Assembly: GCA_977030845.1 (NCBI GenBank)
Contig: OZ365110.1
Span: 10,540,001 to 10,604,000, forward strand
Reading direction: 5' to 3'
DNA: 64,000 bases
Origin: Fimbriosthenelais zetlandica
Taxonomy: Eukaryota
A model generated the notes under the pieces. That model ran no database searches and had not been told where the DNA came from. It worked only from the letters and a program-made list of their open reading frames with translations. Positions 7,132 through 60,039 of the stretch are shown piece by piece. The position numbers and the translations under genes are program-made. Position 1 is the stretch's first letter. Each line of letters opens with the position of its first letter.

Positions 7132-7506
7132 CGGTGTAACAATTTCACATTATCACCTCACATTATGTCCCTCCCAGGAATTTGAAAACGTTTTCAAATT
7201 CCCCCCAGGAATATAAAAACGTTTTCAAATTACCGAGGGGGGAATGTGAAAACTGTTCTCAGATTCATGCCCCCATTTTTACACCAATCCCCGCGGAATT
7301 TGAAAATTTTTCAAAATACCCTCCCCAACCCACCAGGAATTTCAAAAGGTTTTGAAATGTATAAAAGGGGGTTAATTGAAGGCAGAATGTTTGGGAAACA
7401 TCTAAAACAATCTCCTATGTTTTCATCTTCCTGCTGGGAGAATTTGAAAAGGTTTTCAAGTTCCTGGGGGTAACTTGAATAGAGGCGATTCCAAATTGTT
7501 ACACCG
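7132..7506. mobile_element. MITE-like element with 14-bp TIRs and internal palindromes
   Basis: CGGTGTAACAATTT (7132-7145) and AAATTGTTACACCG (7493-7506). Repeated internal palindromes such as GGAATTTGAAAACGTTTTCAAATTCC. No clear TSD. Confidence 0.7.
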
Positions 7507-9411: not shown

Positions 9412-9471
9412 TGTTATGTTGCTGGAGGTAGATATGTGCATTTAACCACCAAGAGCGTACTGGCTACTTTT

Positions 9472-9783
9472 AAATGAGCGTTTGTAAATCGTGAGAGAAA
9501 ATGAGCGTTTGTAAATCGGGTGAGAAGATGAGCGTTTGTAAATCGGGAGAGAAAATGAGCGTTTGTAAATCTGGAGAGAAAATGAGCGTTTGTAAATCGG
9601 GAGAGAAAATGAGCATTTGTAAATCGGGTGAGACAATGAGCGTTTGTAAATCGGGTGAGAAGATGAACGTTTGTAAATCGGGTGAGAAGATGAACGTTTG
9701 TAAATCGGGTGAGAAGATGAACGTTTGTAAATCGGGTGAGAAGATGAACGTTTGTAAATCGGGTGAGAAGATGAACGTTTGTA
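9472..9783. repeat. 27-bp minisatellite, ~11.5 copies
   Basis: Unit GAGAAGATGAACGTTTGTAAATCGGGT. Early units carry ATGAGC and late units ATGAAC. It explains the repeat ORFs 9442..9849 and 9501..9914. Confidence 0.95.
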
Positions 9784-10086
9784 CAGCGCGTGCTTTGGGC
9801 TTAGATCAGGAGAGACAATCAAACTCCTATCTGTTTTCATGTGATCCAATGATTACCCAAGGTTTTCAAGTTTCAGGAACAAACCTTAGTATAGTGTTTA
9901 TCTGCAGTATGTAGTAGTAAGGTATCTAGGGGGGATCCTAGGGGAGGGTGGACCCCCTGCGCACCCCCCCCCCCCCCCAACCACACTCCACCCTCTAAAT
10001 CCACGCCGCCTATCTAAGTATAATATCTAGTCTCGTACATGTATTAAGATACAAGTAGACAATAGACCTGGTAACAAATAACAGGG

Positions 10087-43400: not shown

Positions 43401-45458
43401 ATGCGTCAGCGTGTTTCTTTGCTAAGAAAGCGATAAAAATACAAGCAAACAGAGGCATTCACAGTCTGTTCCAGGCATAAAATGTTCCTGTCGCAAATCT
43501 TGTGCAATTGCCAATAGCCCTATTGATTACTATTACTAGAATTTGTGATTCATTAGTTTTGTGAAGAATATTTAAAAACACGAGAAAGAATGCAGAACAT
43601 GTTCGTCCTATTCTGCACAAAGAATATGGGCTGGTGACACAGTAAAAGTGTGACAATTGCTTATATACAGGGTGTCTCAATACCAAACTTTATAGGACCA
43701 TCATTTTCAAACCATCTAGGAAAAAAGAAGGTACCAACAGAAAGTAGAAAGAAATTAGTTCAAAATGATACAATTATTACTGTCCTAGGGTCACGCATCA
43801 TCGAGCAGCATTGTTGTGCTGGGTACCTGCTAGTTTGCAAATGGTGGCCCTATAAAGTTGGGTACAGTTTTTATTGCGACACCCAGTTACTTGCAGGACA
43901 TGTTTCCTATAGACATGCTACATACCAATTCTGATATAGCCAGACTAACAGAAGTTACTCACGCGTTTTCATTTTTTCTTTTGCCTTTTGTTTTTCCTTT
44001 TGCTCTCGTACTACATCCAATATAAAGTCATGAGTTGTTTTTTTTTACTTTCTAACTTCAGCACTAGAACCATTTTTTCAGGATTTCAAAGAATAAATTG
44101 TTGATCTTTATAACAATTAACCGAATATGATCTTATTATATAGAATATAATTATAAACTTTTGCATAGAAAAAGGACAACTATGGTATATTATAATATAG
44201 AACTAACCAATGGGTAGTATGCGCTGAGGATAAATGGGAGGGCTTTGGCCCCAAGGTTTTAACCCCAATTAAGAATTCATTTTAATCTCATGGACAATAA
44301 ATATCAGGGATAGCATAAAATTAAGGATAACTTACGGGTGCGCAATTGTTTCTCTCTTGAATCCTTGAGTTTTTCAGCCACAGTCGGCTGGTGAGGTCGT
44401 GACTTCTTTTTGGATTCTCCCCAGGCTGCTAGTGGCTTGGGACTCCTGTCTTCATTAATAGGATGTGCCGGTGGATGAAATGATTCAGTGTCAGTACCAA
44501 CCAGGAAACAGTCTGGGCCTTTCAGTATTTCATCCAATGATCCTATCTAAAATAGAATAGAAGAGGTTGTTTTACTGAAATTACTGAAGTTTTTGCAGTA
44601 TGTTCACTCTAAGTTGATCCGAAACCAATTTGTTGTTGGTTGGAGTGGCAGGTCTGGGTAGGGTATATGATCCTGGGGCTTCCTGGGGCTGGATGTCCCT
44701 TGGGCTACGCCCTCGGGACACCCCTCCACCCTCAGGACATACCACCAGTCAGACCTGCCCTCGCTCAGTTCTATATATTTATGAATACTCACCTCTTTTC
44801 CCTTCTCTGTGAAGATTTTGCACGCCGGAATCCCAAAGCTTTCACCAATGTCATTGCTGAATTCAGGGAATTCTTGTGACGTTGCACGATTGAGAAGAAA
44901 TACCCTGCGAAACTCTGACTCTCCATTCCGGATGAATGTTAACTTTTTGGGTGGACGCTTCTTTGCATAGTACCCCGGATCAGAGCGCACACGGCCGACT
45001 TTCCTCGAAGCCGCTGCAGCTGGTTGAAGATAGCGATGTCGTCCACTCTTCAACTTCCCAGCATGCCAGGGTTTCAACCCACGTCTGGGAGACTCAGAGC
45101 TCTGTCCATATCTCTTACGACCTTCCATACAGAGGTAGGTCCGGTTTTGTTCGAACTGATTGAAGTCAGTGATGGTCCTCTTGCCACTGTGCGTCCGGAT
45201 GCCATTAACGGGGATTTTGACTCGCGCGCTGAGGTAATCATAGAGGGAGTCGAAATGTGGGAAACACTTTTGGTTGATGGAGACGATTCTCTCACAGGCA
45301 AAGGGGTTATTTGAGGGGATGAATTTCACCCGTCGGCTCACCTCCATGGCATGGGCAGCGTTGAAGGCATTTGCGATGGAGTAGAAATTGAGGTTGTCGG
45401 GGGCAGACTCAGTGGTGTCCTCCCCCATGGATGGGTCGGTGTCGTCAGTCTGAGACAT
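10414..45458 (-). CDS. RP1: RP1/RP1L1-like protein, long form: DCX-DCX, PLAT x2, beta-trefoil-like x2, Pro-rich linker, PLAT x2, micro-exon repeat array, PLAT; 3' end unresolved
   Basis: Core exons (minus): 45458-44793, 44546-44336, 40496-40339, 37626-37540, 37145-37013, 36675-36524, 36014-35936, 35056-34975, 34674-34584, 34091-33962, 33577-33474, 30299-30123, 29306-29091, 28356-28179, 27504-27304, 24406-24249, 23723-23631, 22919-22787, 21130-20982, 20592-20423, 19793-19738, [16 micro-exons], 12833-12777, 11302-11043, 10546-10414. All junctions are GT-AG and phase-consistent. DCX-like segments: RVKFIPSNNPF..FDSLYDYLSARV and KKLTFIRNGE..VFLLNR. PLAT motifs: YEVTTVTGDLWNAATDGNVYITIYGENGDTG, IGHD..GNGWFLD, RWLDEGEEDGKTVRE. 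About 1290 aa of core plus up to 275 aa from micro-exons. The symbol means a co-orthologue of RP1/RP1L1. Confidence 0.85.
11545..12569. mobile_element. Degenerate ~1-kb element with the termini of the AGCCTGGAGCACACTAATCC MITE family
   Basis: Left end AACCTGGAACACACTAATCCGATTCTCTATCC at 11545; right end GGATTAAAGAATCGGGTTAGTGTATTCGAGGCT at ~12537-12569. Confidence 0.5.
13672..13924. mobile_element. PIF/Harbinger-type MITE (copy 1)
   Basis: 27-bp TIR TGGCCCGTGTCCACGAGGCGACAAAAT with TAA on both sides. Nearly identical to 48130-48376. Confidence 0.9.
14227..19010 (-). CDS. Array of 16 symmetric (phase 1-1) micro-exons of the RP1-like gene, each encoding a GWxKVxxxLxxI-type peptide
   Basis: 19010-18945 GSEPNGWSMINEKLPEIINAKS; 18676-18614 EPNSWQKVAEHLPDILQGELK; 18221-18153 xKNQGWKMLRAAQALKSHLKPIT; 18036-17974 GNGWVSVNDHLKAIKALSLPK; 17798-17730 AKNQGWKMLRAALAVKSHLNPMK; 17398-17345 VRSGWELVSQNLTEINSQ; 16630-16586 GWQKANENLSAISKN; 16274-16230 GWSKVHDNLHNMLNR; 16015-15971 GWHKVTVNIPHISTS; 15795-15751 GWRKVSDNLTHINNT; 15635-15591 GWNKLSENLSQIQNG; 15145-15101 GWRKVGDNLTRINSA; 14963-14919 and 14714-14670 GWNKVARELPTMLNF; 14461-14417 GWIKVARELTTMLSF; 14262-14227 GWVKVNDKLPYI. 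Each has AG| and |GTRAG, a length divisible by 3 and no stop. Confidence 0.85.
14390..14985. repeat. ~250-bp tandem triplication, each unit carrying one micro-exon
   Basis: Units start near 14390, 14641 and 14891 (CCCTT(C/T)CTAAATGGACTA...). Units 2 and 3 are nearly identical. Confidence 0.9.
17640..18450. repeat. ~420-bp tandem duplication carrying two micro-exons; one duplicated exon has decayed
   Basis: 17700-18050 aligns with 18120-18445. The copy of the GNGWVSVNDHLK exon at 18428-18370 reads GNGRATVNDHFKAIIAFGY*, with an in-frame TGA and no donor. Confidence 0.8.
20061..20399. mobile_element. MITE family with TGTGAC(C)TGTTTTCATGAAA TIRs, TA-flanked
   Basis: TIR pair TGTGACCTGTTTTCATGAAA..GAGTCTAAAGTCGCA / TGCGACTTTAGACTC..CGTGAAAACACGTCACA. 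Other copies at 24070-24192, ~45810-46143 (partial) and 57795-58203 (TA on both sides). Confidence 0.8.
22171..22389. mobile_element. PIF/Harbinger-type MITE (AGCCTGGAGCACACTAATCCGATT family)
   Basis: TIR AGCCTGGAGCACACTAATCCGATTCTC...GAGAATCGGATTAGTGTGTTCCAGGCT, flanked by TGA/TAA. Other copies at ~41439-41570 and 51425-51606 (TAA on both sides). Confidence 0.85.
23095..23283. repeat. 22-bp minisatellite (~8 copies) with a palindromic core
   Basis: Unit CTGATCTGTCACAGATGTGTTG; the core ATCTGT-C-ACAGAT is self-complementary. Confidence 0.95.
23803..24017. mobile_element. hAT-like MITE (CAGGGTTCCCAG...CTGGGGACCCTG)
   Basis: CAGGG termini and repeated TTCCCTGA subterminal motifs. Related copies at 27558-28158 and 28664-28972. 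No clean 8-bp TSD. Confidence 0.7.
27558..28158. mobile_element. hAT-like MITE interrupted by a SINE
   Basis: CAGGGTTCTCAGCAG at 27558 and TTGGAACCCTG ending at 28158. Removing the SINE (~27821-28131) restores colinearity with 23803-24017. Confidence 0.75.
27827..28131 (+). mobile_element. Full-length tRNA-derived SINE
   Basis: GGGGAGTTAGCTCAGTTGGTTAGAGCG (A-box), GGTTCAATCCC (B-box), a hairpin-rich body and an A-tail after TTCTAACT. Four copies in the window. Confidence 0.9.
28664..28972. mobile_element. hAT-like MITE, third copy
   Basis: CAGGGTTCCAGCAGTTCATGAAAACAGAATTCCCTGAG...CGCTGGGAACCCTG. Confidence 0.75.
29417..29730 (+). mobile_element. Full-length tRNA-derived SINE, more diverged copy
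   Basis: Same head and body as 27827-28131. Flanked by TATATATTATATA / TATATATGATATA, a possible TSD. Confidence 0.9.
31072..31274. mobile_element. PIF/Harbinger-type MITE (AGCC..CTCCACTGCTGCGATT family)
   Basis: TIR AGCCGGGCCTCCACTGCTGCGATTTTGCTTGC...GCAAGCAAAATCGCAGCAGTGGAGACATGGCT with TAA on both sides. Second copy at 46272-46473. Confidence 0.85.
37692..38073. mobile_element. Palindromic non-autonomous element (TGTTGTACAA family)
   Basis: TGTTGTACAA...TTGTACAACA ends and internal CCCTCGCC/GGCGAGGG pairs; homologous to 10087-10309. Confidence 0.7.
39790..39975. repeat. Compound (GAAT)n/(ATCA)n microsatellite
   Basis: Runs of GAATGAATGAAT and ATCAATCAATCA are visible directly. Confidence 0.9.
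40279..40345. repeat. 27-bp tandem repeat that triplicates a 5' splice donor
   Basis: Minus strand TTTGAT|GTAAGTCTTGATCCATTTAAA repeated, giving GT donors at 40338, 40311 and 40284. Confidence 0.9.
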
Positions 45459-46271
45459 GGCTGCTAACAGTCGTCTACCTCAGTGTTATGCAACAGGCTT
45501 CTCCCAGAACTGAAAAAAAGCAAAGATAACATTTTAAGTCAGCAAAATAGGTCAGAAAGATATATACTTTTATAGATTTGGTGGCCAATTATTTAGGAGT
45601 CAACAGGACTTCCAAGTTAGAAAATATAGCAGTCCACCCCCAAATCGAGGAGTCTGCCATATTTTCGCTTGTCAATAAATAGATCTAGAACCGACCAAGG
45701 TGTGGGACAGGGGGTGGGGGGGGGGCGATATCAACACATGTCACATATAGGTGTTGATATCCAACACTAACTGCCACATCCCAAACCAAAGTCAGTTCTG
45801 GATTTACCTTTGACCATCGAAAACAATAAAACACGAGCGTTCCAATGATGTATAGCACAAGGAGATGTGAAAAAGGTTTATATTTTTAATAAAATTCCAA
45901 CAAATTAAAGTAGTGACTGCAAAAAGTAGAGAAAATGCCCATTTCAGACATCTGGACGAAATCTTGAAGGGACAACACGCACCAAGGTGAACTCTTCTCA
46001 ATTGCAATCTAAACAGTGTATAATTGTTTTTAATGCCAAAAATGCTAAGAGAAATAAATAGCTTGTTTACAAAACTTTCAGGCCTATAGAGCTGAATGGC
46101 CCGATGCATCGACTTTAGACTCATTTAGTGAAAACACATCACATATTGTATTCCTTATAGGCTTAAATAAAAAATAGACTACATTTCAAGAGTGCATCCT
46201 GGATATAGAGGAAGTACGAAACAGGCCATTTCCACCTTTTCATTATAAATTGGAACTCAAAGCCGGCTTAA

Positions 46272-46473: not shown

Positions 46474-47016
46474 TTAGATTAACTGTACATTATACCTGGA
46501 ACCTGAAGGGACAAGTTTGATTGTTTCCAAACATGCAATAAAGTAATGGATATCACCAGGTCAAACTGACTAATAGTCAGGGTTTGGAACATTTGATATT
46601 GGTGTTTGATTTTGTAGCAGCAACAAGGGTCATTTTACATCCTGGAGAAAACATGTTACCGGCATGGCTACTTAGCCTACTCGTGGGTATTTCGATTCTC
46701 AGGAGGGACAGTGGAAGACATTTCTCTCCCCATCCCTCTCTCGCTATCTATCTGTCAATCTCTCAGTTTATCTGTCTGTCTACTCTTTCTATCTCTGTAT
46801 CTCCCTCCCTCACTCAACTCTCTCTCTCTTTTTCTGCCCATATTTAGAGACAACTTAAGCTCAGATCATTGAAGAATAGTATATACTGTTCCATTAAAAA
46901 AAGATGGAATTAGCCTAAACAGTACTATAGAATATGAATTATAAAACTCATATCTAGGCTATCGATAAAGAATTGTGGCAAGTAAATTCTAACTGAGGGA
47001 TAGCAAAAGAAGAAAA

Positions 47017-47055
47017 ATCATTTCTTATCAGTTTAGGAGGGCCCTGATAAGGGCC
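47017..47055 (-). terminator. Histone-type 3' stem-loop plus HDE-like element (copy 1)
   Basis: Sense strand: CCTAAAATAA-GGCCCT-TATC-AGGGCC-CTCCTAAACTGAT-AAGAAATGAT. The stem-loop is at 47055-47040, 43 nt after the stop codon. Confidence 0.75.
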
Positions 47056-47098
47056 TTATTTTAGGTAGGTAGAGACGCTAAAGTTGATGATGAGGTCA

Positions 47099-47422
47099 TT
47101 AGCCCTCCAGATCAGCGTCACAAACGTCCTGCCAATCGATGTCATACTTGTCTAGCAAATCATCCTCCATAGCGTCCAGTTGATCAGCGCTATCTTCTGC
47201 GTACTGTGTAAACATGTCCCTCACACCCTCCAGGGTGAGAATGCGCAGTCGCAGGTTGTAGCGCAGTGTTTTCCTGTCGTCGCGGAGGGCGCGCTGGTAA
47301 CGAGCGTTGATGGCCCGGATGTTGTTGTTCATCAGTATCAGCTGACGACAGACGCCGTTAAAACGACGTTCCATGACGCGCATCTTCTGGATCATTTCAA
47401 CAGCTCCCTGTGAAGTTTCCAT
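47099..47422 (-). CDS. Intronless 107-aa uncharacterised helical protein with a basic core and acidic tail (copy 1)
   Basis: TTGCCATGG start context; METSQGAVEMIQKMRVMERRFNGVCRQLILMNNNIRAINARYQRALRDDRKTLRYNLRLRILTLEGVRDMFTQYAEDSADQLDAMEDDLLDKYDIDWQDVCDADLEG*. GC content is high relative to the flanks, and the ORF is intact in a second copy. Confidence 0.8.
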   Translation of the reverse strand: METSQGAVEMIQKMRVMERRFNGVCRQLILMNNNIRAINARYQRALRDDRKTLRYNLRLRILTLEGVRDMFTQYAEDSADQLDAMEDDLLDKYDIDWQDVCDADLEG

Positions 47423-47685
47423 GGCAAATTTTGTTGGGTTTGAGACAAGGTGAAAAAGAAAAGGTTCTGACAATGTCAATGAGACCTGTTTCTTCTTGGT
47501 AACTTCAATGTGGAACTGAACGTGGAAGTGGGAGGTTTATTTCTCTTTACTGATGGAAGAATGTAATGGAGTAGAAGGCAGTAGAATATTCTGTAATATA
47601 GATGATAGTAGAATATAATTGATTGCTGGTTGTTGTTTGCTGATTAAGCAGAAGACAAGTTCTGTCTGCTAACCACATTGTCTGG

Positions 47686-47822
47686 TGTATTTATATGCCC
47701 CGAGGTGTCTCCCTCGTCACTCAGGTGAACGTCGCGCGAATCATTGACACCTGAGATGTCATGTGTCAAAATCACAATCTGCGATTAGCCTCAGTGTTAA
47801 AATGTCCAGATCGCGCGAACGT
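47686..47822 (-). promoter_or_regulatory. TATA box and conserved upstream motifs of small-ORF copy 1
   Basis: TATAAATA on the minus strand (47695-47688). TCGCGCGA at ~47736 and ~47811. The block is conserved in copy 2. Confidence 0.6.
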
Positions 47823-48129
47823 CGCTACAGTATGTCTTTCACACCTGCTGATATTAGTGAGTAGCTTGAGCAATGAGTAGACTTGTCACTTTTTGCGTGG
47901 CGGCCGGCTAATACCGGAAATTACAGACAGCAATTATTGTTGACGTTTTAAGGAATCACCTATATTTCCGCTTCCTGTTCTTCATCAGTTTTCCATGTAT
48001 GAGGCCTCATAGGAAGGTATACACAAGGACTGCGATATAAATAACATGGCTGATTTAATGGACTTCCCTTTACACTATGAGAAGAACTTAAGATATGTCA
48101 TCCACTGAATAGTGGAAAGGCGACATTTA

Positions 48130-51109: not shown

Positions 51110-53016
51110 ATGAACAGTACAAGTAATGGTAGTAACGTTGGGGACACTGAGCTATCCGTGGCTGATATGGTCATTGAATCGTGTGTATTATCTACCATTA
51201 TTCTGGTGGCTTTATTAGGTAATGGTTTGATCCTTTCCTATAACATCCTCACCAAGAGAAGAAACTTGTTGAACCCAATTGACATCCTCATACTCAATTC
51301 AGCCCTGGCCGATTTTATCGCCACTCTAAGCGTATACCCTGCTCAGGTAAGATTTATTCAATAATAGGTTTGAAGATTGTGAGTATACAGTCATGGACAT
51401 GTATCATTAAGTTAACATCAGTAAAGCCTGGAGCACACTAATCCGATTCTCCATCCAGTTCGATCCGATAGCTGTCCCAAACTATATTTCTATTCACGCC
51501 AAATGCTTGTGATTTGAAAAGACCATTACACTCATGTTAGGCGAACCATTGACGAAATATCAATCATTGGATATCAATAGAAATGGGGATTAGTGTGTTC
51601 TAGGCTTAAGTCTGCACATAGTGATGTTAAGGACATAACCGTTTCATTTTAATATAGATGTATGGGGTACTGATGCAGTCGTGGAAGTTGGGTGAGTTGA
51701 GCTGTCGAATTGTCTACATGATTGGATTTGAGAGCATCGCCACTTCTGTGAATTCCAATTTCTTGATCAGCATCTTTTGCTTGTACACTTGCATTCTTCG
51801 ACCTCAAGCCGTCATCCGTGTAAAACACGCGCTCTATCTGACCATCGCGTTATGGCCTTATACATTTTTTTTGGCACACCACAGTGTCCTTACTGGGCAT
51901 GTTGATATTGCATTTGATGACCAGATCATGTATCTTTGCTGGGCCGGTCGCGACAAGAACTTTCACAGGCTTTTATTACAGTCAGTATTGCCCGTAGGTT
52001 ATATACCAATAATCCTCACTTGTGTCACCTATGTTATAATTTTTGTTAAGATAAAATCGCTGACTTTTCACATGAACCAGGGAACTAATGTGAAGTTAGC
52101 TCACTGTACTCTGGGTATTATTGTACTCTATATGATTTGTTACATGCCAAGCTTGATTCTCAAACTGTCAGGTTTGGACAGACTTTCACAAGTTTGGGTC
52201 AAAATACTTCGATATTCGCAGTATCTTCTCTATTCAAATGCTGCTTGGAATCCTCTCTACTATCTCTACAGGATGAATTATTTATTCCCTCCATGGGTGA
52301 GGAATAGTTTAACGAGAAATGTGGTATCGGTGGCTTATGGAACAAATGAAGCGCTTGGTGTGAATAGCCAGCCAGGAGGCAGCAGGTCTGTAACAGGGGA
52401 AGGGGTAGAGGGCATGGGTGTGACAGGTATCTCATGTATGACATGTAGACCTACTCTGACAGGTATTTCAGGTATGATAGGTAGACCTGCTCTGACAGGT
52501 ATTTCAGGTATGACAGGTAGATCTGCTGTGACAGGCATGTCAGGTATGACAGGTAGATCTGCTGTGACAGGCATTTCAGGTTTGACAGGTAGATCTGCTG
52601 TGACAGGCATTTCAGGTTTGACAGGTAGATCTGCTGTGACAGGAATCTCAGGTGTAACAGGTAGATCTGCTGTAACATGCATCTCGGGTATGTCACATAC
52701 ACCGGCTGTGACAGGCATCTCAGTTATGACAGGTAGACCGGCTGTGACAGGAATATCAGGTATGACAGGTAGACCTGCTGTGACAGGCATCTCAGGTATG
52801 GCAGGTAGATCTGATGTGACAGGCATCTCAGGTATGGCAGGTATAACTGATGTGACAGGTATCTCTAGTACTAGTGGTAGACCTCATGTGACAGGTATCT
52901 CAGATACGACAGGGATCTCGGTTTTGACAGGTAAGCCAGATGTACCTGGTGCAATTGGTGTTAAGGCAGGCGTGCAGCATATAATGGTCAAAGAATTAAT
53001 AAAGTCGGATGAATAG
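51110..53016 (+). CDS. Class A (rhodopsin-like) orphan GPCR, 2 coding exons, 531 aa, long repetitive C-tail
   Basis: Exons 51110-51346 (|GTAAG) and 51658-53016 (TATAG|), phase 0. N-terminal NST/NGS sequons; TM1 LLGNGLIL, TM2 NSALADF, TM4 LWPY, TM6 ICYMP, TM7 NAAWNPLYY. No DRY motif. An upstream acceptor ending at 51069 implies a further 5' exon. Confidence 0.88.
51425..51606. mobile_element. PIF/Harbinger-type MITE in the GPCR intron
   Basis: AGCCTGGAGCACACTAATCC...GGATTAGTGTGTTCTAGGCT with TAA on both sides. Confidence 0.85.
52420..52935 (+). repeat. Coding 36-bp minisatellite (TGISGMTGRSAV, ~14 units) in the GPCR C-tail
   Basis: Visible in the DNA (GTGACAGGCATCTCAGGTATGACAGGTAGATCTGCT) and in the translation. 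Confidence 0.95.
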
Positions 53017-54000: not shown

Positions 54001-54431
54001 ATAGGCTTGGCACCATTATACACAAGAAGGCATAATTTGTTACTCATTCACAGAATGTAAAATATTGTCAAAATATTGTGATAAATATGTAACAGTATTA
54101 TTATGTAACAGTAATACTAGATAGATTATTAGATTTTGAGACAGAACTTAAGGCCCATATTCTGAGATCTGTAATTTTAGTTAGAGATCTCAGATTCTAA
54201 AAAGGTCAATCGCTAACCACTGTTGCAACGCGCTGGGTCCTTCCTATATATTATTTCGCCCAATCAGTTTCAATTCATTGTACCGATGTTCTGATGGTGT
54301 ACCCCATGTACCCAGCCTATGATGTATGACTGATTTTGTGAACAATTGGTAATGAAATAAAAAGAAGGAGAATTTAAAAAAAAATATATATATAGTTGCC
54401 TTGGGTAATTATGTATTTCAAAACACGAAAG

Positions 54432-54470
54432 ATCATTCCTTGTCAGTGAAGGAGGGCCCTGATAAGGGCC
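54432..54470 (-). terminator. Histone-type 3' stem-loop plus HDE-like element (copy 2)
   Basis: Sense strand: CCTAAACAAAAA-GGCCCT-TATC-AGGGCC-CTCCTTCACTGA-CAAGGAATGAT. The stem-loop is at 54470-54455, 51 nt after the stop codon. Confidence 0.75.
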
Positions 54471-54521
54471 TTTTTGTTTAGGTAGGTAGTGACGCAACAG
54501 CTACAGTTTGTGACGAGGTCA

Positions 54522-54845
54522 TCAACCCTCCAGATCAGCGTCACAAACGTCCTGCCAGTCGATGTCATACTTGTCTAGCAGATCGTCCTCCATAGCGTCC
54601 AGTTGATCAGCGCTATTTTCTGCATACTGTGTAAACATGTCCCTCACACCCTCCAGGGTGAGAATGCGCAGTCGCAGGTTGTAGCGCAGTGTTTTTCTGT
54701 CGTCGCGGAGGGCGCGCTGGTAACGAGCGTTGATGGCCCGGATGTTGTTGTTCATCAGTATCAGCTGACGACAGACGCGGTTAAAACGACGTTCCATGAC
54801 GTGCATCTTCTGGATCATTTTAACAGCTCCCTGTGAAGATTCCAT
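54522..54845 (-). CDS. Intronless 107-aa uncharacterised helical protein (copy 2)
   Basis: About 12 nt differences from copy 1 over 324 nt by manual alignment; 5 are amino-acid changes and all lie outside the central RQLIL...TQYAE core. Confidence 0.8.
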   Translation of the reverse strand: MESSQGAVKMIQKMHVMERRFNRVCRQLILMNNNIRAINARYQRALRDDRKTLRYNLRLRILTLEGVRDMFTQYAENSADQLDAMEDDLLDKYDIDWQDVCDADLEG

Positions 54846-55122
54846 GGCAACTTCTGATAGGTTTGAGACAAGGTGCAAAAGAAAAGATTCTAGGAAATGA
54901 AAATCTCAATGAGAGTTTCTTCTGGGTCAATTCAAACCTAATTGTCAATGTGGTAGTGGGAGGATTCTGTCTCTTTGCTGATCCAAGAATGTAATGGCGT
55001 AGAAGGCAGTAGAATATTTTGTTATAGAGTAGAATATGACTAATTATTGGTTGTTGTAATGTTTGCTGATTGAGCAGCCGTTGAGCAGAAGACAAGTTCT
55101 GTCTGCTAACCACATTGTCTGG

Positions 55123-55270
55123 TGTATTTATATGCCACAAGGTGACGCCCTCGTCACTCAGGCGGATGTCGCGCGAATGATTAACACATGTGATGTCAAG
55201 ATCACACTCTCTCAATTTTAGCGATTAGTCTCAGTGATGAACAGACTTGATGGTCGTCGCGCGACCGTCA
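55123..55270 (-). promoter_or_regulatory. TATA box and conserved upstream motifs of small-ORF copy 2
   Basis: TATAAATA on the minus strand (55132-55125). The CCCTCGTCACTCAGG..GTCGCGCGAAT block is shared with copy 1. Confidence 0.6.
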
Positions 55271-58200
55271 CTATAGGTTGTAACACCTATGAAGTCAGGA
55301 ACTAGCAATGAGTCACATGTCAAATGTCGCACTCAATCGCACGTTTTGCTAATAGTCAGTGTAGCTAAGCTTTGGTTGAATCGACTTGAAGTTGTCGGGT
55401 GACGGTCGCTATATGTTACAGTAATACACATTCACTTACAAGAACTAAATGCTATAAGAAATACTTTGAAAGACATCTATCAGCCATCGGAAACAGAAGC
55501 AAGGATTTCAAAGGAGGTTATAATAAACCACATGTTTTGCTTTTGGACAAACATAGTGCATTTTTTCCTCGATTTCTTCGGGTAAGAGAAGTAAGTTCAT
55601 GTCTGAAGATAGCTTGCAAAGATTCATTGATAGAATGAAAGGATGTTGTTTTCTAGTGAGCTAAATAATAATAATAAAAAATTAAAATGTGACATGCAAG
55701 AAACTGGTTATATCCGTCTACATGTGTAGTCCATATTAATTCTTTTTAGGTCGACACAAAAATGTGAGTATCAATTAATAATTAACTGGTTAGATCGTGC
55801 TCCCAGTTTCCTCTTGCATCGATTGGATCATTCTAGAGAATATGCGATCATGAAACTGGGTAGAAACATGAATGGGCTCCAGACCCCCCGACCCCAACTC
55901 TGCAGTCTATTCCCCGCATTAAATGTTATATACACGCGAGTGGACAATTAAGGTGAAAAAATAAAACCATCCAAAACAAGGCAGATTGATTAATAGGATA
56001 GAAATAAAGAAATTGTAGTTCTTCTATCCCTGATGAACAGTCTATCAAAATAATCTGTGAGATTGGAGAATATCTATTCAGGTTCTGCGATCAATGGGAG
56101 TGGGTCTTGCAACTTTACAAAAGTGTAAACTGAATCAACAGAAATTGCAACGGAACCTCAATAATCATTATGGCAAATACTAGGGATAGCTAATCCAGAA
56201 TACGAAACAAGAAAGTAACTCAAAAACATGCATTTGGAAGTGAAATTATTCACGCCACATCACAATTTATGCTGATTTGTAAAATGCGGATCCATAACAT
56301 TTTTCCGGTTATCATAAACAATTGCAAAAATGGACCCTCATCATTAATAACAGCCAAAGATTAAAGCTTACAATTTAATAAAATTTCATGAAAATATAAT
56401 AAAATACCTGAAAATAATGTAATTTGCTTTGAACTATTGCATCTCTATAAAGTGCACGTGAACGGATATAATGCTTGGCAACCATCGTTCCTCTAAGATA
56501 CTATTTATCCATGGCTATAATGCATTAACGGTTAGTGAAATGGGGCTTTTTAATGATGTATAACGCATAATTTGTTGTTAGTGACGACGAACAATTTCAC
56601 CACACATGTGATGCACTTCGCGGGGTCGTTGCTCGCGGGAAAGCAGAACCGAACGCGCATATATCATTAGAACAATAGGCTTAGCTAGGAAGACATTATT
56701 AATATGATATGATAGAGGGAAGTGTAATGCATACTGTATGCATTTCCTTAAGCTGGGTCATAAACTCCAAGGAAATGGTTTTGCTATCGTTTGTAAGTTG
56801 TAAATACATGAATGCTTATAATCATAGACATAAAGGAGATGTCTATGTTATAATGTAGTTGCTTAGAGTTGGAAGTGAATTATCAAATCCCCATGGCACA
56901 TTTGGTTCATTAGTTAATTATATATTGTAGGCCCTACAATTTGGGATTGTTTGTTATGATAACCATATAGTGCCACACAAGATCAATGTGCGATTTCGTA
57001 AGCTACATGGGTATAGTTATCAAAAGCAGCTGCAAATTTGCCAATAAAGCGAATACATTGTGATGATTGCCTTTGATTATTAACAAATAATAATTTTTTT
57101 CTTTCTGTTTATCATATCCCAACCTCAATACTGTACAGTGGATTCTCATTTAACGATCAATTCACTAAAGCGACCATTCCAGTAGCCGACCACTAAAATG
57201 ATCAGAACCCAGTGTTTCAACATCCAATATGTATGTTTTATACATACTCACTAAAGAGACCATCCAGTAATACGACTGCAATTAGTTCATTCGGATCTTG
57301 AGTGGTCTCATCAGTGAGATTTCACTGTACATACAAGGTCATCCCTTTCAGATCTTTCTTTCTCTCCTTGCCCTTGGCCACCAATGTTGTGTCTGCGACA
57401 TTACACGCATGTGTGGATCTAAGTGGAAGGAAATGCAGCCGAGCATGGCGGGGCAAGAGGTGGGAGCGTGGCAATGTTTATTAGGAAAGTAACAGTTACT
57501 AACGTATACCAATAAGGAAGGCTGAGGTCTGGGATGATCAATACAATAGGCCGTATCGATCACAACCTGTGGCTGTGGTTTGATCTTTCAGGCAGGCTTT
57601 GTTAGTGGTAAATTATACCTGCCAGGCTTATATAATTTTATCTCATAATGATGGGTTGTTTCAAACGCTGGCCGGTAATTCACTAATTGATGATGTAATA
57701 ATGTATGTAATTATTGCTTGGATTTGTATTGCTCATATAAACATGTCTTAATAATTGTACCTCCAATCTGATAATTACATGTAAATACCATATATGTGAC
57801 CTGTTTTCATGAAATGAGTCTAAAGTCGCAAAAATGAGATTTGGAGTTAGGTACACATTCGTATAGTGCATATTATGAGCTTTTCAATGATATATAGTAA
57901 AATAGGTGAAAAATAGTTATATTTTAAAAACAATTTCAAAGAATAAAAGTAGTGACTGCAGAAAATACCCATTTCAGACAATTCTCTGTCCAACTGGAAG
58001 AAATAGTGAATGGACAAGACGCACAAAGTTGAACTTTTCTCAATTTCACTCACAAAAATAGTAAAAATATCGTATCCTTGCTTTTAAGGTGAAAATGCTG
58101 AGAGAAATAAGTAAGTTTGTTTAGTTTACAACGCTTTCAGGCCTGAAGCTCCGATTAACCTGGTGCGACGTATGTTAGACTCATTTCATGAAAACACATC

Positions 58201-60039
58201 ACATATGAGAAACATTATTGTAGAAATGATTGACTCAGTGGTTTAGTGTCACGGCTTGCCCAATAGCCCAGGGCAAGTAATTTCACCTGGCGGGCAAGTC
58301 ATTGTTATCCTAGGTGGCCCCCTCTCAGTCAAAACATCGTTTTTATCATCAAATTACGAGCGATTTTCTTGATGGATAATTGACGTAGACCTGTATTGCT
58401 CATATTAACATATCTTAATAATTGTACCTCAAATCAGGTAATTAAATACGGGTACCGTAAAACGGGGTTACTTTGGCCCACTTTTTAAATAATTTTCTCA
58501 AATTCCCTTATTATTCATGTTCCAATAATATAATACTTTATGTCAATATTGAGCCCCCTGATACTGTTATCAAACCCTATATGCATATTAAACGATATGT
58601 CTATGGGAGCTATGTACCGGTACCATTTATGAAAAAGTATTATTGCAGAAGTGATTGGTTTTTAAAATGGCTTGCCCAATTGCATAGGGAAAAAATAATT
58701 TCACCTGGCAGGCAAGTACCCTAGGTTGCTCTACTCGGAAGTGAAACTTGGTGCTCAGTCGACACACTCAAATTTAGAACCGAAAATAGTTTGAAATATT
58801 TTGGCAGTACAAGATCGTAATTAAGGACCATAAATCAATGAGCTAGTTATTCTACTCTAGAAACCGTAGATCACTTTAATGGTAGGTGCTTATGGCTCAT
58901 CCGATCGCCTATAGCAGATCGGCTCTATACCAAGGGACGAGATTACATTTAATCAATATAATTATATTGATCTGCCTCTAATTAACCTTATTATAATTAA
59001 CTGACGTTAAAACTCTAATTATCGCCATAGTAGGGGCAGGCATAATTAAGCATTCATTACCAACAACACATTTAAATGGCCAGGTATCGAGGGTCAGGGA
59101 TTGAGGCTATCAAGTTGATCTGACCAAGGAGATATAGAGTAGCCTATAGAACGAGGTATTCTAAACATGTACTTTGCTGCTGTGACCAATGGGATATAGG
59201 AAGCAAATCGTAGGCCCGGGGCAAATTCACTAAACAATATATCAAATGACATTGGATCCATTATAATACCCATTGATCATTGTTTTAATATTATGAATCA
59301 TGTGTTAATTCATGTGTTATTATCAATATAATTAATATATTCCCCATCCCAAACTCCTTGCACAAATTCCAAGAATAATGACTGTATGCCTATTGAAGTG
59401 ATAATGTGATTTTGGGTAAAGATTGGGCAATATGAATCTTGAAGAATGTAGAATGATCATATACCGTATACAAGGCAAAATAGGATCCCCTCACCCCCAC
59501 CCCCAATCAAAGCCGTTACTATTATTATCGACCCCACTACCCCCAACCCCTCTTCCTACATTCGTTATAAAGGTACTAGGGTTTACATCATTGCCATTGG
59601 TTTATCCACACTTAACACTTCCTGATCAGCCCAGCAATATAATAGTGAAAATCAACTATCATGGTGAGCATGGCTCAGAGTGACCCATATCAATATTTGA
59701 ATACGGTAAGGCTACCGTAACAATGGTCATTATACTATCCCTCGTATCAGCTGTTCATAGAATTATGCTTAGGTCGTGATATCAGGATATATATAGCGAG
59801 AAATATTTTGTAATGTGCACCGCTCTCCTGATATCAATTTTCTGATTCATAATAACGTTACTTGGAGTTGTAAAGATTTTTTTAATTCTTTTTCCTAATA
59901 CCGGTGGTAAAATATTAGGCATATTCGAGAAGGGAAAAAAGACAACATCATAATTATTTCGACAAAGATGTTAAATTTTAAAAGCTTACCTACCTGATGA
60001 TTATTGTGCGGTTTCTAGATTGGGCTAAGACACAGATAT

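Follow-up and report, generated by a model that had tools for sequence, protein, structure and literature searches.

In animals, the combination of a 3′ stem-loop and a downstream box has been reported solely on replication-dependent histone mRNAs, and the two factors that act on it, SLBP and the U7 snRNP, are treated as dedicated to these messages. In marine invertebrates, the early histone genes are arranged in tandemly repeated arrays. A full-text literature search returned no report of a non-histone gene with a histone-type 3′ end, and neither a preprint of 2026 on how the pathway evolved nor a 2026 review of histone gene organisation mentions non-histone genes of this kind. A conserved non-histone family with the complete signal would break the histone exclusivity of SLBP/U7. 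Here we consider such a case, a gene present in two copies within a 64-kb stretch of genomic DNA, referred to throughout as the window. The best reading of this gene is that SLBP/U7-type cleavage quite probably yields a poly(A)-less mRNA from a gene that does not encode a histone. With somewhat less assurance, but still as the likelier case, we propose from the comparative sequence data that a mollusc-centred spiralian family of non-histone hairpin proteins, whose messages would be poly(A)-less products of SLBP/U7, would constitute the first non-histone clients of the pathway.

Both copies lie on the minus strand, and the coordinates of their features are collected in Table 1. The original prediction had described copy 1 as an intronless ORF of 107 aa with a TATA box and an AUG-poor leader, no AATAAA nearby, the sequence AAAATAA-GGCCCT-TATC-AGGGCC placed 43 nt past the stop and a further element about 13 nt past the stem, and each of these is found where it was said to be. 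In copy 1, the TATA box stands 273 nt from the ATG, and the single ATG between the two, at +17 from the TATA box, falls upstream of the expected transcription start, so that the leader of about 245 nt is AUG-free; copy 2 likewise has a TATA box and an AUG-free leader of about this length. The start codon of copy 1 lies in the context GCCATGG, and the protein that it opens is basic in its N-terminal half and acidic in its C-terminal part. Both genes are intronless and have short 3′ UTRs before the stem-loop (43 nt in copy 1 and 51 nt in copy 2). A motif search found neither AATAAA nor ATTAAA within 740 nt of the copy 1 stop, the nearest occurrence being at 741 nt, and neither motif within 1500 nt of the copy 2 stop.

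The two copies are paralogous, lie 7.4 kb apart on the same strand, and share a block of about 830 to 860 bp (47004-47830 against 54419-55276, 84% identity), which starts upstream of the promoter, ends 36 nt past the stem and is bordered by unrelated flanks. Within this block the coding sequences, between which the alignment shows 5 non-synonymous and 6 synonymous differences, are 97% identical and the 16-nt stem-loops are identical, with the leader and the remaining UTR being less conserved and carrying indels. Each promoter contains two copies of the TCGCGCGA palindrome, and these 4 are all of its occurrences in the window, where 0.14 would be expected. A mobile element was considered as the nature of the duplicated unit and rejected, the edges of the block fading rather than stopping sharply. 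A GPCR gene, with its best match in a mollusc-dominated cluster, sits between the copies.

Table 1. Features of the two gene copies (coordinates within the window)
Feature	Position	Strand	Remarks
Copy 1 distal TCGCGCGA palindrome, promoter	47811..47818	minus	from the motif count in the 64-kb window
Copy 1 proximal TCGCGCGA palindrome	47732..47739	minus	37-44 nt upstream of the TATA box; conserved in copy 2
Copy 1 TATA box TATAAATA	47688..47695	minus	inside a block of ~100 nt nearly identical in copy 2
Copy 1 predicted 5′ leader, AUG-free	47423..47665	minus	transcription start predicted
Copy 1 coding sequence	47102..47422	minus	107 aa, uninterrupted; from the ORF list and 575 homologue clusters
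Copy 1 stop codon TAA	47099..47101	minus	
Copy 1 stem-loop GGCCCT.UAUC.AGGGCC	47040..47055	minus	starts 43 nt past the stop
Copy 1 spacer	47027..47039	minus	
Copy 1 HDE-like box AAGAAATGAT	47017..47026	minus	
Copy 1 end of block shared with copy 2	47004	minus	
Copy 2 distal TCGCGCGA palindrome, promoter	55257..55264	minus	
Copy 2 proximal TCGCGCGA palindrome, promoter	55169..55176	minus	
Copy 2 TATA box	55125..55132	minus	
Copy 2 coding sequence	54525..54845	minus	107 aa; 95% protein identity to copy 1
Copy 2 stem-loop, same 16 nt as copy 1	54455..54470	minus	51 nt past the stop
Copy 2 spacer, HDE-like box AAGGAATGAT and end of shared block	54419..54454	minus	box at 54432-54441

The hairpin itself is of the histone type in both copies: a 6-bp stem with a GG base and a U-A top pair, closed by the loop UAUC with U at positions 1 and 3, and preceded by an A-rich 5′ flank (AAAAUAA in copy 1, ACAAAAA in copy 2). 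It is the minimum-energy structure in both the 41-nt and the 97-nt contexts, at -10.9 kcal/mol. The exact 16-mer occurs at two sites in the window, one per gene copy, against an expectation of 0.02, and a strict histone-type pattern (GG at the base, 6 bp, U-A as the top pair, U at loop positions 1 and 3) finds just these two sites on both strands of the window, where shuffled sequence gives a mean of 0.38. The Rfam model Histone3 had been proposed as a check on the hairpin. In a whole-window scan at a permissive E-value threshold, it matched solely at the two stem-loops, on the ORF strand (copy 1, 24.1 bits, E 0.023; copy 2, 24.9 bits, E 0.012), and was the sole Rfam family to match at both of them, but the scores are below the Histone3 cut-off of 34 bits, and the whole-window scan at the gathering threshold gave no match. 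The shortfall is due mainly to the 3′ flank, which at both window stem-loops is CUCCU in place of the usual ACCCA (neither ACCCA nor ACCA is present there), together with an A at loop position 2.

Downstream of the stem, both copies carry the purine-rich box AAG(A/G)AATGAT at a distance of 13 nt, within a stretch that is 80% purine; on its sequence the box is a short, HDE-like element. How far such an element extends can be judged from eight paralogues from one metagenome source, for which mean pairwise identity was measured by position relative to the stem-loop. Identity is 0.26 at -60 to -31 and 0.38 at -30 to -1, rises to 0.89 in the stem-loop, holds at 0.85 from +1 to +12 and again at 0.85 from +13 to +32, and falls to 0.35 at +33 to +52 and 0.26 at +53 to +92. 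The conserved island in these paralogues thus consists only of the stem-loop and the 32 nt downstream of it, and its purine-rich core, AAAAAGA(G/A)AU, begins about 13 nt past the stem. The island would reach about 27 nt past the cut expected for a histone mRNA, as would be expected of a U7-binding element and not of an element of the mature mRNA. In the organism that harbours the paralogues L001, L003 and L033, the shared core is a different one, AGTTGR followed by a T-rich stretch, and lies 16-17 nt past the stem, with spacers that differ; a distinct core of this sort fits a partner that may be species-specific.

The original prediction had described the product as an R-rich helical hairpin with an acidic tail and no histone fold, and as to the fold AlphaFold2, Foldseek, Pfam and a PDB profile search agree with it. 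The AlphaFold2 model, built on a 61-sequence alignment, has a pLDDT of 94.3 and consists of two antiparallel helices (residues 2-48 and 51-93) and a short C-terminal helix (97-106). As modelled, the 107-aa protein is thus a helical hairpin, with neither the core-histone fold nor the winged helix of H1. Pfam has no family for it, the one match being a sub-threshold one to Noelin-1 (E 0.2-0.6), and adds no further domain when the longer family members are searched; the PDB profile search with the 107-aa protein returned coiled coils only and no histone. Foldseek against PDB and Swiss-Prot likewise returned no histone, only generic helical hairpins such as PspA, the arm of seryl-tRNA synthetase and prefoldin, all at E > 0.1 and rejected as homologues. 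Against the AlphaFold DB clusters, the significant Foldseek matches, again without a histone among them, are uncharacterised proteins only, at 25-33% identity, with accession ranges that we take to be those of Mytilus, Mizuhopecten and Crassostrea.

The 107-aa protein is one of a large, unnamed family that is found above all in molluscs and is represented in an annelid and a nemertean as well. A single-sequence search of proteins clustered at 90% found one relative, and it was an exhaustive phmmer search that revealed the family, which counts 575 cluster representatives with E-values of 1e-3 or less, 104 of them at 1e-10 or less. Its members are mostly 90-200 aa long and have a conserved core of about 75 residues. 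Those that carry a taxon name come from the bivalves Mactra antiquata and Tegillarca granosa, the annelid Lamellibrachia satsuma and the nemertean Tubulanus polymorphus, and a structural neighbour in the ESM Atlas belongs to a 51-member cluster in which the commonest phylum is Mollusca. Look-ups of the family clusters gave no protein names, the profile search gave only the name "hypothetical protein", and a feature search of the ESM Atlas gave weak, unrelated matches only. A scan of viral contigs found no relative of the 107-aa protein. Moreover, a histone motif scan of the window and of all fetched loci detected no histone genes, and hence, as far as the examined flanks extend, the genes of the family do not lie inside histone clusters.

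The question on which the reading of the window turns is whether the hairpin accompanies the family. The comparative set comprised the genomic DNA around 29 family loci, both window copies included, some of the related loci having been found with a 10-sequence protein alignment, and the region past each stop was inspected. A histone-type stem-loop follows the gene at 18 of the 29 (both window copies, L001, L003, L033, the L006-L008 arrays counted once, L009, L015, L017, L018, L020, L022, L026, L027, L029, L030, L031 and L036, with L009 and L010 listed together as stem-loop loci). The stem-loops lie 7-130 nt past the stop, and the genes that they follow encode relatives 34-72% identical, in several other organisms. 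L036 is the Mactra antiquata gene; L001, L003 and L033 are paralogues of one organism, L033 having two stem-loops in tandem; and the stem-loop of L031 is a degenerate 5-bp copy. In one organism (L006-L008) the gene occurs in tandem head-to-tail arrays of more than 25 copies with a period of about 1.84 kb, each repeat with a TATA-like box and a stem-loop/HDE. Histone3 scores across the family loci range from 21 to 36.4 bits, and three exceed the gathering score of 34 (L036, 36.4 bits; L017, 35.0; L030, 34.4). The hairpin that the original prediction rested on is, in short, conserved beside homologous ORFs.

Searched over 379 kb on both strands, the strict pattern gave 45 matches, of which 44 stand directly after family ORFs, and the chance of a strict match in any given 150 nt is about 4e-4. 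In an alignment of 15 stem-loops, none of the 90 pair cells is left unpaired, and all sequences have U at loop positions 1 and 3. Stem position 3 shows C:G and U:A in 7 sequences each, and position 4 is changed on both sides once. Since the stem-loops were chosen with a pairing pattern, the figure of 100% paired holds partly by construction, but the placement after ORFs and the covariation do not. The 3′ flanks in L009, L017, L022, L026 and L030 are ACCAAA, ACCAUA or ACAAAA. Moreover, the L033 hairpin, GGCCCUUUUCAGGGCC, is identical to the wild-type competitor used for human SLBP (PMC1635294), and the L009 hairpin, GGTCCTTTTCAGGACCACAAA, is the start of a Drosophila stem-loop/HDE reporter cassette (PMC4105754).

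Among the members that have no stem-loop, six (L011, L012, L032, L023, L024 and L028) carry AATAAA or ATTAAA no more than 100 nt past the stop, and two (L016 and L019) carry a downstream GGTGAGT, a possible sign of introns in the 3′ UTR. At L021, L034 (Lamellibrachia) and L035 (Tubulanus), neither a stem-loop nor a poly(A) signal was found near the stop. Counted over the whole set, a stop with AATAAA or ATTAAA in the next 100 nt is found at 1 of 18 stem-loop loci and at 6 of the 11 others (Fisher p = 0.0055, with paralogues that are not independent); in Mactra antiquata, an AATAAA abuts the stem-loop. The absence of the stem-loop from L034, from L035 and from the close paralogues L012, L032, L016 and L019 means that it is dispensable for the family. 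In a maximum-likelihood protein tree the stem-loop type does not form one clade but appears in at least 3 separate subfamilies, and a single origin of the stem-loop on this tree was rejected, since well-supported branches force at least 3 changes. Because the signal is a composite one, repeated loss from an ancestor with the stem-loop seems more likely than repeated gain. The association thus looks ancient within the family, with losses to poly(A) signals on several occasions, and the best explanation of the pattern would be that a histone-type 3′ end is old and widespread in the family and that ordinary poly(A) signals have repeatedly taken its place.

Put together, these observations point to the following scheme. 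Each copy in the window would be an intronless RNA polymerase II gene complete in itself: a promoter and a leader, then the ORF of 107 aa and a 3′ UTR that is short. The pre-mRNA would be cut a few nucleotides past the stem-loop by the histone machinery, instead of undergoing cleavage and polyadenylation: SLBP would sit on the stem-loop, the U7 snRNP would pair with the purine-rich downstream box, and CPSF73 would make the cut. The product would be an mRNA without poly(A) and with the stem-loop at its end, the synthesis, translation and decay of which would be tied to SLBP, that is, to S phase and/or to maternal storage. From the arrangement of the DNA we infer the binding of SLBP and U7, the point of cleavage, the absence of poly(A), the coupling to the cell cycle, be it to S phase or to the oocyte, and any chromatin-related role of the protein. 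The original prediction had proposed that a non-histone gene may use the SLBP/U7 pathway, and at the level of sequence that proposal gains support from the conservation of the hairpin beside homologues and from the non-histone fold.

What has to be weighed against SLBP/U7 cleavage is, above all, the possibility that the stem-loop is a true SLBP site on mRNAs that are mainly polyadenylated further downstream, so that it would act as an internal 3′ UTR element or as one of two 3′ ends, as in H2A.X. Dual processing of this kind, by stem-loop and by poly(A), is documented for H2A.X (PMC7807067) and for histone genes of differentiated tissues (PMC5100578), and the AATAAA abutting the Mactra stem-loop and the signal 741 nt past the copy 1 stop are both what this account would need. 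Even so, the long signal-free stretches past both window stops (740 and 1500 nt) and the end of conservation at about 32-36 nt past the stem, seen in the window and in the eight paralogues alike, fit a cleavage signal better, and we regard downstream polyadenylation as a possible but unlikely explanation. Far less probable is the suggestion that the hairpin is only histone-like, bound by another factor or by none, with SLBP/U7 uninvolved. It would account for the sub-threshold scores of the window copies and their want of an ACCCA flank, and GGCCCT/AGGGCC is nearly palindromic, so that the hairpin forms on both strands. Yet the Rfam matches fall on the ORF strand only, all the positions on which SLBP is known to depend (GG at the base of the stem, U-A at its top, U at loop positions 1 and 3) are kept across divergent paralogues with compensatory changes in the stem, a purine-rich box is conserved at a fixed distance, three homologous loci exceed the gathering score, and some of the hairpins are identical to tested SLBP ligands.

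The remaining accounts would derive the signal from a histone gene. If the protein were a very divergent relative of a histone or linker histone, its 3′ end would simply be inherited, and the intronless structure, the TATA box, the basic helices and the tandem arrays of one organism would all be unsurprising; but a two-helix hairpin modelled at pLDDT 94 is neither the helix-loop-helix-loop-helix fold nor a winged helix, Foldseek, Pfam and the PDB profile returned no histone, and histone motifs are missing from the window and from the fetched loci, which makes a divergent histone, an outcome that the original prediction had itself allowed for, very improbable. We give just as little credence to the recent capture of a 3′ cassette from a histone gene, by recombination or on a mobile unit, with the cassette carried along as a neutral passenger. 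The small size of the duplicated unit in the window, just ~830-860 bp between unrelated flanks, is in keeping with it. The stem-loop is found, however, in at least 3 well-separated protein subfamilies and in several organisms, the edges of the unit fade gradually, and conservation is higher in the stem-loop and HDE than in the UTR that adjoins them.

If cleavage by SLBP/U7 does generate the 3′ ends of these messages, the family would offer more than an exception to a rule. Close paralogues that differ in having a stem-loop or a poly(A) signal amount to a natural experiment on what the pathway confers. The basic hairpin with its acidic tail and the arrays in one organism suggest, and here we speculate, that replication or cleavage divisions call for large amounts of the protein. 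The results point to an unstudied protein whose supply in molluscs appears linked to DNA replication or to the cleavage of the embryo; it would be needed in step with replication or early cleavage and is possibly an unrecognised abundant component of chromatin or of replication.

The closest known system is in any case the replication-dependent histone gene. The window copies depart from it in what they encode, a helical hairpin of an unnamed family and not a histone, in the CUCCU that replaces ACCCA with scores of 24-25 bits, and in a leader of ~245 nt that is long for a histone-type gene. Early histone arrays and the L006-L008 arrays are both tandem, but the L006-L008 unit holds a single non-histone gene, and the two copies in the window are, unlike either, dispersed, a GPCR gene lying in the 7.4 kb that separates them. 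As for H2A.X-type genes with dual ends (PMC7807067), the likeness is that stem-loop and poly(A) types coexist within the family, and the difference is that the alternation here is between non-histone paralogues and not within one gene, except in the Mactra gene. In the signal, nonetheless, the likeness to replication-dependent histone genes is extensive: the 6-bp GG-base stem, the 4-nt loop with U1 and U3 and the A-rich 5′ flank are those of the histone 3′ end (RF00032), the purine-rich, HDE-like box ~13 nt past the stem, the short 3′ UTR, the intronless structure and the missing poly(A) signal are those of the genes that bear it, and some of the hairpins beside homologous genes are identical to the histone stem-loops of human and Drosophila.

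On contigs from ENA ERZ26222911 (L006, L007 and L008), more than 25 copies of a member of the helical-hairpin family are arranged head-to-tail with a period of about 1.84 kb, every one of them with a histone-type stem-loop and a CAGAAGAG box. The public gene calls on these contigs, at 160 or 186 amino acids, run past the TGA stop, and the real product has 105. At L033, a single family member is followed by a tandem pair of histone-type stem-loops with 16 nt between them, and in Mactra antiquata (L036) the 5′ side of the stem-loop is immediately adjoined by AATAAA, a contact that could allow dual use of 3′ ends. In two close paralogues that have no stem-loop (L016 and L019), GGTGAGT occurs in the 3′ region, 185 to 295 nt past the stop, and may mark 3′ UTR introns; if so, these would be ordinary genes, spliced and polyadenylated.

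Other features lie in the window besides copies 1 and 2 (see table). The rhodopsin-type GPCR encoded between them has as its top Atlas cluster a GRL101-like one, mostly from Mollusca, and its C-terminal tail is built of tandemly repeated TGISGMTGRSAV-like units, each about 12 residues long. A search of 5.8 billion proteins with the 284-aa ORF a short way downstream of copy 1 found no relative (threshold E <= 1e-5). The dispersed repeat that flanks the gene region is unrelated to the gene unit of the two copies. Farther off lie a palindromic element, probably a MITE-like inverted repeat, and a minisatellite with a coding look.

Features in the window and at two family loci
Feature	Position	Strand	Remark
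TCGCGCGA palindromes	47732-47739, 47811-47818, 55169-55176, 55257-55264
Palindromic element	7163-7247		both strands match plant-miRNA families, sub-threshold
Overlapping ORFs	9442-9914	both	short tandem peptide repeats (e.g. SSSHPIYKR)
284-aa ORF	44604-45458	-
Dispersed repeat	45835-46146, 57877-58206		~320 bp, 70% identity
452-aa GPCR ORF	51658-53016	+
Tandem stem-loops	L033:1830-1902
AATAAA/stem-loop	L036:10353-10374

The palindrome TCGCGCGA occurs 4 times in the 64-kb window, against an expectation of 0.14, and all 4 occurrences fall inside the promoters of copies 1 and 2, where each TATA box is preceded by one palindrome at a distance of about 40 nt and by another at about 120 nt. Three of the 4 read as TTCGCGCGA, which is similar to an E2F-type core, and such E2F-like sites would fit transcription at G1/S.
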